A model generated the notes under the pieces. The model ran no database searches. It was not told the origin of the DNA and worked only from the letters and a program-made list of their open reading frames with translations. Position numbers and translations under genes: made by a program. A stretch of DNA of 62,818 nucleotides, the filler included, from Octopus bimaculoides (lineage: Eukaryota), in assembly GCF_001194135.2 (NCBI RefSeq). It is 6 parts of 6 records of this genome, joined end to end, with 100 filler letters (N's around TTAATTAATTAA, not from the genome) between each part and the next. Parts side by side here need not be neighbours in the genome. Positions count along the whole stretch, not along the records: positions 57,809 to 62,818 come from NW_026385730.1; 5 more parts are not named here. One strand, given 5' to 3'. The first letter of the stretch is position 1; each line of letters opens with the position of its first letter. Of the stretch, positions 58,343 to 62,818 are shown in pieces.

Positions 58343-59317
58343 ATGGAAACTCATTCTGAAGATATAGAAAATATGAAACGGAAGCGAACACAGTTCCTCA
58401 AAATTTTGGAATTTCACAGTAAATTTAATACTATTAGGAAATCAGTTATGGATATTTCCTCGCCGCAGTTTGGAAGAATATTTTTCCACGCTTTATATAT
58501 AATGCATTTTCTATGTCTGATTATAAACCCTATTCGTTACATTGTTAATTTTATACTACTGGAAGTTTATGAAACCGATGAAATGTTTGTGTATATTCTC
58601 ATCATATTTTATCGAATTATGCTTGCCTTTTGTTGTCTGATACAATTCTTTTGGCATTCTAAAAACAAACAGCTAATTGAAACATTTGCTCAAATTGAAA
58701 TCGAAGAAGAAGATAGAAAATTTTATAACTGCAATATAAGATTCTCATACATATCTCTCTCTATAGGTATACTGCTACCGGTAGCTCTTTACATATTTTT
58801 GAAGTATGTTGTGCCGCTTTTTAGCCCTGGTATGCTGATTTTCATAACATATCCTGTACCAATCAACAGTACTTTCAACATTCCATTTCTAACAATACAA
58901 GTTGTAATTAATTGCATGTCACTGACGTCTTATTTATTTGATGTACATATAAATGTAATGATTGGATTCATTCTTAAGTATGAATTTGACAAGCTGGCGA
59001 CTCAGGCTCAATGCTGCCTAAAGGAACAGCAGCCACACATTTCAATTTTGGCGAAGAAACCTAGAGAGATTACAGATTTATGTAATGCACACGATAATCT
59101 GAGTACAATACTGGGATTAGTAAATGAATCATTACGGTTTTCTACAGCATTTATCGTTCTTGGTAGCATCATTAATTGCTGTATTGCAACGTACGCAACT
59201 ATAAATGTTCTATATAGAAACAACGTTCCTGTATACGTTTATATAACAATGATTGCATTCGGCAGTCTGATGACTTGGATTTTAACACTTTGGAATGGTG
59301 TTCGTTTACATGCTGCG
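58343..59317 (+). CDS. Gustatory receptor-like (GRL / 7TM chemoreceptor ion-channel family) long first coding exon, TM1-TM6; TM7 exon(s) not seen in window
   Basis: 325 uninterrupted codons with six hydrophobic segments (~aa45-71, 81-104, 134-153, 182-212, 268-290, 296-318). There is a 'ILKYEF' after TM4 and a GR-type loop 'EITDLCNAHDNLSTILGLVNESL' before TM5. It ends '..LWNGVRLHAA' at a phase-0 consensus donor GCG|GTAAGT (GT at 59318). Family assignment is by pattern recognition, not HMM. Confidence 0.8.
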
Positions 59318-60649
59318 GTAAGTTATAAAAAATACTTACATAATACCATGTCAGTGTAATATCCTTATTTTCAACACGAACCAAAAATGCCATTGCATTC
59401 AATTGCAAGTGACTATGAATGGTGGAATACTCTATGCATTCGATTGCTAATCTCGATCTTTAAGTTTTGCAGGCACCAAGAACTATCGTTTCAGTTCTCG
59501 GCTCCATGACCTACTGAAACTCTTGAACGTTTCGCTCGGTGGAATCTAGAGATGCTCGACATATCAAATGCTAGCCACATCTGTCACCCTATCCATAAAT
59601 CGAAACAACGACCTTATGGTCTTGTGCTAAGTATCGTAACCACCAGACCATATATTTCATATATAGTACTTCGACTTTATTATACTAAAATGTATTATAT
59701 AACATGTCGCTTTCTAATACTATAGGCATCATATTCTTGGATGAGAAGTTATATATTTTTTTAAAAGATGGGGAAGACAGACACATCACATTTTTTGGCA
59801 GATTTCAGTACTTAGATATTGCTTTTGATAAGTATCAAATTATGGTGTAGAATCTCCTTTCTTCCTGTTTCCTGAGTAACGCTGCGATGGACTGAAAAGA
59901 ATGGAATAGATTATTGAGTAGACGAGTGGGAATGTTTTTATGCAAGTATAAACATAAATATAAGGCAACACGTATATATACAAAAAAATAAGTAATTAAT
60001 TATAGGCAAAAGAAATGCTAAAAGTTTTGCGAATTTAATAACTAACGTATAAAGTAACCCAAAAGAAATAACAAACTAAGATTATGTAAATTAATGTTAA
60101 AGTTAATTAGCATATTTTATCATATATTATCATATATTATCGCATTGTCACGCTTAGAAGTTCATTAAGTTGAATGATGTTTAATAGAGAGGGAATCAGA
60201 TACTGGACAGTAATGGGTGAGTAAAACCTAAATGAAATTGAAATGTATGAATATACATACATTATTAGTGACAAGCAACCCTAAAATTTATATTGGGTTG
60301 TACAAATAAAGGTAAACAAAAACCTATTGGTCAAAAATTTCAATATTTCAGCGTTCCCGGAGTGAGTTTAGGTAACGGAAATAGAAGAAGGAAATATGGT
60401 GGAAAGCTACAAACACTAGGGAAGAAGCGAATGATTCAGTTTAAAACTATGAAATAGTAGAGTAAGATGGGAGTACATCATAGCTTACAAAAATAAGGGC
60501 ATAAAAAAGGGTTCAAAATATGAGAGTTTACTACAAATTGGTTTTAATTAATTTTAATTAGGTTGGCTTCGATACCGGAAGTAGGAATTTATTTTAGGGA
60601 GGAAAATAACAAGATGGAGGGGGAGAGAATAACAACATAAGAGAAAATT

Positions 60650-60787
60650 TATATATATATATACATATATATATAAATATATATGTATATATATATATAT
60701 ATATATATATATATATATATATATATATATATATATATATATATATATATATATATATATATATATATATATATATATATATATATA
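60650..60787. repeat. (TA)n microsatellite
   Basis: Direct reading. Confidence 0.95.
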
Positions 60788-61094
60788 CACATACACACAT
60801 ATACATGTACATACACACATACATATGTATTAAAGGAAAAAGGACAACAAAATCCAAGGCAGGACGAGCATTTCAAGTCATTTAGAATATTTAATTGGAG
60901 TAAGATGCATTTGATGTAATCAATTAATTAATTAGTTTTTCAGGCCATTTGACTCTGTAAATAATAGTACTCGAATACTAGAGATAGAGTAATATACTTT
61001 ATTAAAAAGCAGCAAAAATATCACAAAAAACCTGTTGTATATATGTATATATATGTATATATGTATGTGTGTGTGTGTGTGTGTGTGTGTGTGT

Positions 61095-61320
61095 TTGTGT
61101 GTCTGTGTTTGTCCCCCCAACATCGCTTGACAACCGATGGTGGTGTGTTTACGTCCGCCTAAATTAGCGGTTCGGCAAAAGAGACCGATAGAATAAATAC
61201 TAGGCATCCAAAGATGGGGTCCTGGGGTCGATTTACTCGACTAAAGGCGGTGCTCCAGCCATGGCCACAGTCAAAATGACTGAAACAAGTAAAGGAGTAA
61301 AAGAGTAAAAGAGTAAAAAA
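61095..61320 (+). mobile_element. SINE family B 3' half, inside the GRL inter-exon interval
   Basis: CAACATCGCTTGACAACCGATG..GGCGGTGCTCCAGCCATGGCCACAGTC..CTGAAACAAGTAAA. Confidence 0.85.
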
Positions 61321-62434
61321 GTATATATATATATATATATATATATATATATANNNNNNNNNNTATATAAACATATAGCTTATATTCATATTTAAGAAGA
61401 AAAGGAAAATGGCGATTGGGTAGTCAATAACTGTTTATTATTAACTGCAAATTAATCCATTATAGATATATATAAACACACGCATACAGAATCACACACA
61501 CACACATATGTACATATACACGATGATATGTACATACACACACATCACATACGTATTCTTTCATCTTCTTTGGCAACTTCAAAAAACGAATGAGTGCATA
61601 TTGATTATTCTTGTAACATCAACATAAACGATTATATTGTTGACAAAGTTAAACAGATGTATGATGCAATGGTAAATATACCCACTTGCTATCACTTAGG
61701 CACTTTTTCATTAAGGTGTTATATAAAAGAAACTAATTGAAGTTTATGCAATAGAGGTGTGTTAATTGTCGTTCAAGAAGATATTATTAAGTGTTGATAG
61801 GAAAACTAAATAGAGAACACTTCCGACCATGTTTATCGAATTATAATAAGGAAGAAAACATTAACTTCTTTTACAAAAAAGTGTCATTCATTTATAGAAA
61901 GTCACGCGTGCACGTGATCGCGCTCGCACGCACACGCACACACACACACACACACACACACACACACACAAACACACAGGCCACTGGAAGCTATATATTT
62001 AGTTATCCATTCTGTTATATCATAATGGAAAGAACGTATATACTAACGCCTTCTAATTTTTATTTCCATTCGTAGAAAGAAGATATTTGATAACAATTAA
62101 GAGCTCAATATTACCTTCATAATCTAACAATTTAACGTCTACTTATAGGAGAAAATAAGTTTCTTATATTTTGAGTCTAAAATTAATATTTGAATTCATT
62201 AAAGGAAGCATATCGGAAGCAAATTTTGCCTCAATACATAGAAACCTCTGATAGTTACATTGTCTCAGTTGGTTTCAGTTTAACGGAAGTCACACACGTA
62301 TACATACATGCATACATACATATATATATATATATATATATATATATATATATATATATATACACGCAGATATCCTATTTCTTTATTGCCCACAAGGGAC
62401 TAAACATAGAGGGGACACACAAGGAGAGACAAAA

Positions 62435-62608
62435 GGATTAAGTCGATTACATCGACCCCAGTGCGTAACTGGTACTTAATTTATCGACCCCGAAAGGATG
62501 AAAGGCAAAATCGACTTCGGCGGAATTTGAACTCAGAACGTAACGGCAGACGAAATACCGCTAAGCATTCCGTCCAGCACGCTAACGTTTCTGCCAGCTC
62601 GCCGCCTT
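62435..62608 (-). mobile_element. SINE family C, ~90 bp upstream of the second GRL exon acceptor
   Basis: Reverse complement of GGCGGCGAGCTGGCAGAAACGTTAGC..GGGGTCGATAAATTAAGTACCAG. Confidence 0.85.
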
Positions 62609-62706
62609 AAATACACACAGATATCCGTTAAGCCATTTAGAAAGACTATTCAAGACATTAAGAAATAAAGCGTGCGTCTTCTTTTCTACCGATTTCAGTT
62701 GCCGAT

Positions 62707-62818
62707 ATGGCATCTCTTTTTGAAGTTGACGGAACTGGAGAAAATATGAAAACAAATGAAACACGGTTCATGAAATTACTGGAATTTCATCGGAAAATTA
62801 ATATTATTACGAAACCAC
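62707..62818 (+). CDS. Second GRL paralogous first exon (5' part, runs off window)
   Basis: MASLFEVDGTGENMKTNETRFMKLLEFHRKINIITKP aligns to the N-terminus of the 58343 exon (ENMKRKRTQFLKILEFHSKFNTIRK). The two share the upstream context GATTTCA(G/T)TTGCCGAT-ATG. A pyrimidine tract plus AG acceptor lies at 62697-62698. Confidence 0.8.
   Translation, partial: MASLFEVDGTGENMKTNETRFMKLLEFHRKINIITKP

Follow-up and report, generated by a model that had tools for sequence, protein, structure and literature searches.

A candidate gustatory receptor-like cluster in Octopus bimaculoides with tandem variable first exons and a putatively shared C-terminus

Introduction

Some insect gustatory receptor (GR) and odorant receptor (OR) loci splice long alternative first exons to three shared short final exons, which encode the most conserved part, a C-terminus bearing the seventh transmembrane helix (TM7) (PMC6175461). 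Here we describe part of the genome of Octopus bimaculoides (assembly GCF_001194135.2) that probably belongs to a cluster of gustatory receptor-like (GRL; 7tm_7) genes built in the same manner. The stretch of DNA analysed, hereafter the window, is 62,818 nucleotides (nt) long, filler included; the piece considered here, positions 57809–62818, comes from NW_026385730.1 and contains one complete variable first exon and the beginning of a second. Tandem variable exons are also familiar from the vertebrate clustered protocadherins and UGT1A, where every variable exon is driven by a promoter of its own and joined by cis-splicing to the first constant exon.

A TM7 motif and conserved 3′ introns define animal GRLs (PMC7746228); for non-arthropod GRLs, that article cites Robertson 2015 and Saina 2015. 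No description of shared-C-terminus splicing in cephalopod or mollusc GRLs was found in the searchable literature, which mostly lacks subscription papers. The octopus locus appears to place an architecture of the insect Gr28b/Gr39a type in a new phylum. The original prediction, made from the window's sequence, held that the arrangement was not known to be described in cephalopods; this stands insofar as no paper was found, although the arrangement is already implicit in RefSeq isoform models.

Results

Two variable first exons in the window

The piece contains a single long open reading frame (ORF), on the plus strand at 58343–59359. Within it lies variable first exon 1, which comprises 325 codons from the ATG at 58343 to 59317, is open throughout and ends ...CAT GCT GCG|GTAAGT in phase 0; its product would be a GR-like (7tm_7) N-terminus through the sixth membrane helix. 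Both the 325-codon exon and its phase-0 donor had been predicted, and the ORF and the GTAAGT (59318–59323, plus strand) confirm them. The continuation of the frame past 59317 into the intron, which gives a 338-residue read-through ORF, is a matter of chance and amounts to few codons. The position and phase of the donor are shared across the family first exons examined: 19 of 19 in four loci end at the same position, in phase 0, with GT[AG]AGT or GTATGT.

Exon 1 matches the family first-exon profile with 466 bits. Its nearest paralog, the first exon at 16612 in the O. bimaculoides locus L003, is 78% identical by blastn and shares 72% amino-acid identity. In blastn comparisons the alignment runs beyond the exon, with window 57972–59520 aligning to L003 16272–17807 and to L002 9213–10700 of O. 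sinensis. The 5′ flank common to the paralogs (57972–58342, plus strand; ~370 nt) is 65–67% identical, versus 79–82% for the exon, and its final ~60 nt upstream of the ATG are kept in all METHSE-type copies. The flank is the likely, putative promoter and 5′ untranslated region of exon 1 itself. Flank conservation was seen within one subfamily only, and no motif common to all subfamilies was found. The first 44 nt of exon 1 had no match within loci L001–L004.

Variable first exon 2 starts at 62707 and is cut by the edge of the piece (62707–62818, plus strand), leaving 37 codons from the ATG. This start matches the family first-exon profile with 24 bits at 62740–62814, and the 60 nt upstream of the ATG align, together with the first codons, with exon 1 and the METHSE-type exons. 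A paralogous first exon at 62707, behind an acceptor of its own, had been proposed; the profile match and the flank bear out the exon start, and the acceptor does not survive comparison. Where exon 2 has CAG at 62699, window exon 1 reads tttcaT, and the closest relatives in O. bimaculoides and O. sinensis read ttccaT.

Constant exons and clusters in related octopus loci

Three related loci were compared: L002 (LOC118764607) and L004 (LOC118764608) of O. sinensis, which together provide 91 + 60 kb of gap-free sequence (L002, 91 kb), and L003 (LOC106880719) of O. bimaculoides, one third of which is N. Three short phase-0 exons, 69, 90 and 57 nt long (23, 30 and 18 codons), together encode the C-terminus of the family, and in all three loci these constant exons lie behind pyrimidine-rich AG acceptors. 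In L002, constant exon A (75234–75302, 69 nt) encodes the peptide VHSITRSIHYMQFQDIKPEVVAK, constant exon B (79184–79273, 90 nt) encodes ILVFLNRL...SSTLT, and constant exon C (81267–81323, 57 nt) encodes MIGSFITYILVVIQTKSL followed by a stop, including the TM7 motif TYILVVIQ. Three phase-0 introns separate the first exon, A, B and C in L002, L003 and L004, and the first of them corresponds to the window donor at 59318. The acceptor of exon A reads ...ctag|GTTCACAGTATT. Exon A also contains, 42 nt in, an internal alternative acceptor (caatttcag|GAC) in each of the three loci, which reads ...tttcag|GACATAAAA; its use drops the 14 residues VHSIT(R/Q)SIH(Y/F)MQFQ and gives rise to isoform pairs such as X1 versus X2. 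Between species, the constant exons are identical at 206 of 216 nt and are more conserved than the variable exons.

The related clusters contain five to eight first exons each. L002 has seven on the same strand, at 9.5, 12.4, 31.4, 39.9, 51.1, 56.6 and 70.0 kb, all upstream of a single constant set, and an eighth (METVKTNETQ...), used by isoforms X1 and X2, lies farther upstream. Six degenerate motif scans across the 91 kb of L002, designed from conservation at the level of the family, each matched exon A, B or C only, and three exon-specific profiles, which included abalone and cuttlefish sequences, likewise found the constant exons only. L004 comprises six first exons with one constant set of its own, and a further first exon begins 10 kb after that set. 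In L003, five first exons precede a constant set at 56.1–59.3 kb (plus strand, 56117–59274).

L003 holds a second constant set in inverted orientation (minus strand, 50542–52809), ~3.3 kb from the plus-strand set and head to head with it. The two sets are 86–95% identical, introns included, a divergence that indicates a real duplication; a haplotype artefact was considered and rejected because the identity is only 86–95%. With the inverted set, a second, oppositely oriented cluster is implied, an intron of which would hold the constant exons of the first cluster, and the inverted set is a candidate home for the window exons.

Several further features accompany these clusters. A pseudo-variable exon with one in-frame stop occupies L002 56555–57532, and others, either frame-broken or N-terminal fragments, lie at L003 32057–33034 and L004 6106–6558; L002 also carries minus-strand first-exon fragments at 37751–38162 and 49213–49671. 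ORFs of retrotransposon origin (reverse transcriptase-like) take up the long introns. L004 (CM016866.1, 82.74–82.80 Mb) and L002 (83.16–83.25 Mb) are oppositely oriented, and at least two GRL clusters thus lie within ~0.5 Mb of a single O. sinensis chromosome. LOC118764606 (protein P0017), a more distant single GRL gene, has a neighbouring gene identifier, and an older O. bimaculoides annotation contains fragments called 'Gustatory receptor' (A0A0L8FL56).

Annotated isoforms with a common C-terminus

RefSeq isoforms at each of the three loci combine different first exons with one common C-terminus. For LOC118764607, X1 and X2 derive from the METV exon and X3 and X4 from the exon at 9527; for LOC118764608, X1, X2 and X3 derive from three different variable exons; and for LOC106880719, X1 and X2 derive from one variable exon and X3 from another. 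The isoform lengths add up exactly (319 + 71 = 390, 319 + 57 = 376 and 318 + 71 = 389). These isoforms are annotation models, the evidence behind which is not visible. Tandem variable exons with a common TM7 end, as the original prediction envisaged, are found in three related clusters; for the window's own exons the comparative evidence is strong, and the arrangement remains putative.

Protein family and predicted fold

Searched alone against Pfam, exon 1 matched no family. A protein search with exon 1 led to the O. sinensis LOC118764607 isoforms, which carry PF08395 (7tm_7) and served as the source of the missing C-terminus. When exon 1 was combined with the 71 C-terminal residues of O. bimaculoides, the resulting conceptual protein of 396 residues matched 7tm_7 with 27.5 bits (E = 2.4e-6), clearing the Pfam gathering cut-off of 26.6 bits by a small margin and covering profile positions 37–367 of 370. 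Among the relatives, P0026 and P0017 scored 31.6 and 31.7 bits, respectively, and the full-length proteins P0029 and P0020 gave no 7tm_7 match. On the basis of these comparisons, we assign the window exons to the GR/GRL superfamily (PF08395; 7TM ion channels). The octopus proteins are candidate ionotropic chemoreceptors.

The TM7 motif of the superfamily, (T/S)Y-hhhhh-Q(F), is recognizable in exon C of the relatives as TYILVVIQT, which retains T, Y and Q but has T in place of F; an abalone relative has TYVFIVIQF. When 1.84 billion representatives were scanned exhaustively with HMMER, 17 matched (50% clustering), and those looked up belonged to octopuses, a cuttlefish and abalone. A word-indexed search with the 71-residue C-terminus recovered a single protein and overlooked members already known.

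The structure of one relative, P0021 (O. bimaculoides LOC106880719 X2), was modelled with AlphaFold2 (predicted local distance difference test, pLDDT, 78.8; predicted template modelling score, pTM, 0.73); confidence is low from residue ~330 onward, over the stretch encoded by the first two constant exons. In a Foldseek search of the PDB, the top 11 matches of this model were all insect ORs or GRs (probability 0.99–1.00, template modelling score 0.35–0.54), with AgamOR28, ApisOR5, DmGr64a, DmGr43a, AaegOR10, MhOR5 and BmGr9 among the fold matches. The family is therefore predicted to fold like insect OR/GR subunits, as judged from the model of P0021 rather than from the window's own protein.

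Selection on the variable exons

Aligned with the L003 exon at 16612, exon 1 shows 161 substitutions; the 18 gap columns of the alignment are a multiple of 3, and exon 1 contains no stop codon. At this divergence the frame remained open in 0.2% of random-substitution trials (P ~0.002), and dN/dS for the pair is 0.48. Orthologous exon pairs from the two species have open frames without indels, with P of 0.005–0.017 each. For two of these pairs, L003 16612 with L002 9527 and L003 25005 with L002 12449, dN/dS is 1.31 and 1.55 at dS of 0.07–0.08; values above 1 may reflect diversifying selection on a ligand-facing part of the protein.

The interval between the first exons

The interval between the two first exons (59318–62706, plus strand) spans 3.4 kb with 32% GC, consists largely of microsatellites and two repeats resembling short interspersed nuclear elements (SINEs), and would be intron for any transcript starting at exon 1. 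It had been predicted to lack a TM7 exon, and searches of both strands agree: tblastn with the true O. sinensis C-terminus gave noise only, the family profile on the six-frame translation scored 3.4 bits at best, and the exon-by-exon constant profiles, which reach 41–67 bits on the real exons of relatives, had no match in the window. The matching O. sinensis interval (L002 10520–12442) is gap-free and contains no constant exon.

The first SINE-like dispersed repeat (61038–61353, no strand assigned) has a (TA)n tail and recurs at several sites in L002, L003 and L004 with 75–88% matches; the second, different one (62299–62613, no strand assigned) has 75–90% matches at many places in the same loci, on both strands. 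An assembly gap of 10 N (61354–61363) falls within this (TA)n tail, which comes after ...gtaaaagagtaaaagag in the first repeat, and has TA repeats on either side. Gap-free O. sinensis copies of the first repeat terminate likewise in gtaaaagag...(TA)n. The tail is the cause of the gap, which is crossed by no reading frame of the gene.

Two short strings in the interval had been read as splice signals. One is TGG|gtgagt at 60214–60222 (plus strand), a candidate leader-exon donor; the string is present and lacks support as a splice site. The other, 'tttcag' upstream of the second ATG (62693–62699, plus strand), is a possible cryptic acceptor that is not conserved. Joining 59317 to 62700 would yield LPIWHLFLKLTELEKI ahead of a stop, which would come after 16 codons.

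Discussion

Proposed architecture and its alternatives

We propose that the window contains part of an octopus GRL cluster constructed like the alternatively spliced insect GR/OR loci, a reading that comparison with related loci makes probable. In such a cluster, long variable first exons (~320–330 codons) would form a tandem array on one strand, each coding for the protein from its N-terminus up to and including the sixth helix and each possessing a phase-0 GTAAGT donor but no usable acceptor of its own. One set of three phase-0 constant exons would lie downstream of the whole array, the last of which would carry the TM7 motif. A transcript begun at one variable exon would be spliced from that donor to the first constant exon, with downstream variable exons removed as intron, so that each variable exon would yield one receptor subunit of ~390–396 residues with a common pore-lining C-terminus. 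For the window's two exons we infer a constant set outside the piece, and each variable exon would have its own promoter. A more far-reaching scenario is rather doubtful: that several neighbouring clusters of cephalopod GRLs generate about 20 or more isoforms from a few constant sets, with one promoter per exon and a one-exon-per-cell choice, and that the architecture arose separately from that of insects, through repeated duplications of the exon that precedes an ancient phase-0 intron.

Several observations weigh against the proposed cluster. In each cluster, the full-length RefSeq isoform starts from the most 5′ variable exon, and downstream exons appear as partial models; because only the first exon per cluster has a full-length isoform, we infer rather than observe separate promoters for the internal exons. 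Isoform X3 of LOC106880719 (XP_052825893.1) is such a partial model, built from a cryptic acceptor inside a variable exon. It joins the donor of the METV exon (L003 10957) to a ttgcag acceptor at 17543 and then uses the donor of the second variable exon of that locus, of which it retains the last 62 nt (17543–17604), to reach constant exon A; its N-terminus involves a shifted frame at the end of the METV exon (L003 10903–10957). X3 looks like a splicing by-product, not a receptor, and is unlikely to be of ab initio origin; the model shows that the donor of the second variable exon reaches constant exon A and that transcripts begun at the first exon run through the array. For exon 1 itself, no annotated protein containing it was found in the protein database search, and it lies outside the O. 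bimaculoides cluster L003. RNA runs were searched in two groups of four, over window 57840–60640 and over 58200–59700, with ~6% of each raw RNA run read; one run, X4, turned out to be DNA-like. The check proposed with the original prediction, junction reads from the donor at 59317, found none in the eight runs. The few reads and contigs on exon 1 are 91–99% alike, and a variant common to them at 59032 points to a paralog as their source. Among the orthologous exon pairs, dN/dS is 0.66, 1.31 and 1.55, two of the three being above 1; this indicates fast protein evolution, which is common in chemoreceptors, and weakens a claim of strong constraint. Finally, the 10-N gap sits in the interval between the first exons, and an exon hidden there is a formal possibility, with none present in the O. 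sinensis counterpart.

A separate accumulation of reads was seen at window 59857–59894, where 60–90 partly matching reads occur in all three raw RNA runs with C>T at 59872. These reads run on as GCGTCCCGTCCAGCTGGGGGGAACACATAC, which is absent from the window. The pile reflects a brief fortuitous match with some abundant transcript or repeat and is not expression of the locus.

The window exons could instead be silent relics: recent duplicates that are open but untranscribed or unspliced, for example copied away from their constant exons. The lack of convincing RNA on exon 1 in eight runs and its absence from annotated proteins fit this explanation, as do the pseudo-exons and fragments in the family (L002 56555–57532, and the minus-strand pieces at 37.7–38.2 and 49.2–49.7 kb) and the orthologous pairs with dN/dS of 1 or more. 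We consider it unlikely, as exon 1 maintains 325 open codons in DNA of 32% GC despite its 161 substitutions, at a probability of ~0.002 by chance, with a dN/dS of 0.48 and an intact consensus donor; moreover, chemoreceptors are often expressed in few cells, and the RNA search read ~6% of each raw run. It is very unlikely that the first exons are separate genes, each with C-terminal exons of its own that are diverged, concealed in the gap or interleaved downstream. The 10 N of the gap need not reflect its true length and L003 does hold two constant sets, but no part of the family is better conserved than the C-terminus, and the profiles, which reach 41–67 bits even with the paralogous cluster L004, have no match in the piece or between variable exons in 91 + 60 kb of O. 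sinensis sequence. The orthologous O. sinensis interval, gap-free, is also without such an exon, and the gap falls in a (TA)n tail.

A mis-join or collapsed repeat in a short-read-based assembly would likewise generate a misleading layout, and the gap, the microsatellites and SINE-like repeats of the interval and the one-third N content of the related O. bimaculoides locus all invite this suspicion. Such an artefact is nonetheless highly improbable: Logan contigs of several independent DNA runs hold 89–97% of the words of exon 1, contigs of run X4 tile 58200–59656 without conflict, and the same tandem layout recurs in the gap-free O. sinensis assembly. Barely credible, and rejected here, is a variant of the leader exon that the original prediction suggested for the second paralog, namely that a shared non-coding leader with its donor at 60217 is spliced before each first exon, so that choice would be made by splicing and not by promoter. 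It draws on the pyrimidine-rich 'tttcag' before the second ATG and on one related copy (in L001) that has 'acag' at the same place; yet neither window exon 1 nor its relatives in O. bimaculoides and O. sinensis have the AG, and other subfamilies lack an acceptor before the ATG. The sequence around 60217 is conserved in no paralogous or orthologous locus and had no RNA coverage in four runs.

Implications and comparison with known systems

The presence of this insect-like architecture in a mollusc GRL clade, as seen in the related clusters, would mean either that the design is very old or that the conserved phase-0 intron after TM6 makes its repeated evolution easy. Single-exon ORFs of GRL type would then not be truncated pseudogenes, and gene counts should count variable exons; RefSeq names few isoforms, and exons such as those of the window remain unannotated. 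The clusters point to unstudied candidate ionotropic chemoreceptors in octopus, beside the nicotinic-like chemotactile receptors. The more far-reaching scenario, if true, would mean that an ionotropic chemoreceptor is chosen by a protocadherin-like system, the chemotactile receptors known in this animal being of another family.

The protocadherin-like architecture named in the original prediction holds only as an analogy. Vertebrate clustered protocadherins and UGT1A have tandem variable first exons and constant exons, as the octopus clusters do, but the proteins are unrelated, and their constant exons code for a tail inside the cell or for a catalytic domain, not for a pore helix. Closer in protein family are the non-arthropod GRLs, whose hallmarks are present in the relatives of the window exons as T-Y-x5-Q and three phase-0 3′ introns.

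The exact precedent is provided by the insect GR/OR loci. The predicted parallel with Gr28b and Gr39a agrees with the long first exons and three shared final exons described for insects (PMC6175461). Drosophila Gr28b, Gr39a and Gr23a and Blattella Gr60a-m belong to the same 7tm_7 superfamily and have tandem first exons encoding TM1–6 with a phase-0 donor, and the octopus clusters match such loci even in the number of final exons (69, 90 and 57 nt here). The octopus clusters differ in coming from another phylum (Mollusca, Cephalopoda), within a small lineage-specific GRL clade (17 representatives at 50% clustering), and in their retroelement-rich introns of 4–65 kb. Several clusters also lie side by side with their own constant sets, one pair of which is inverted head to head. 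In contrast to the insect loci, the window exons are known from sequence alone.

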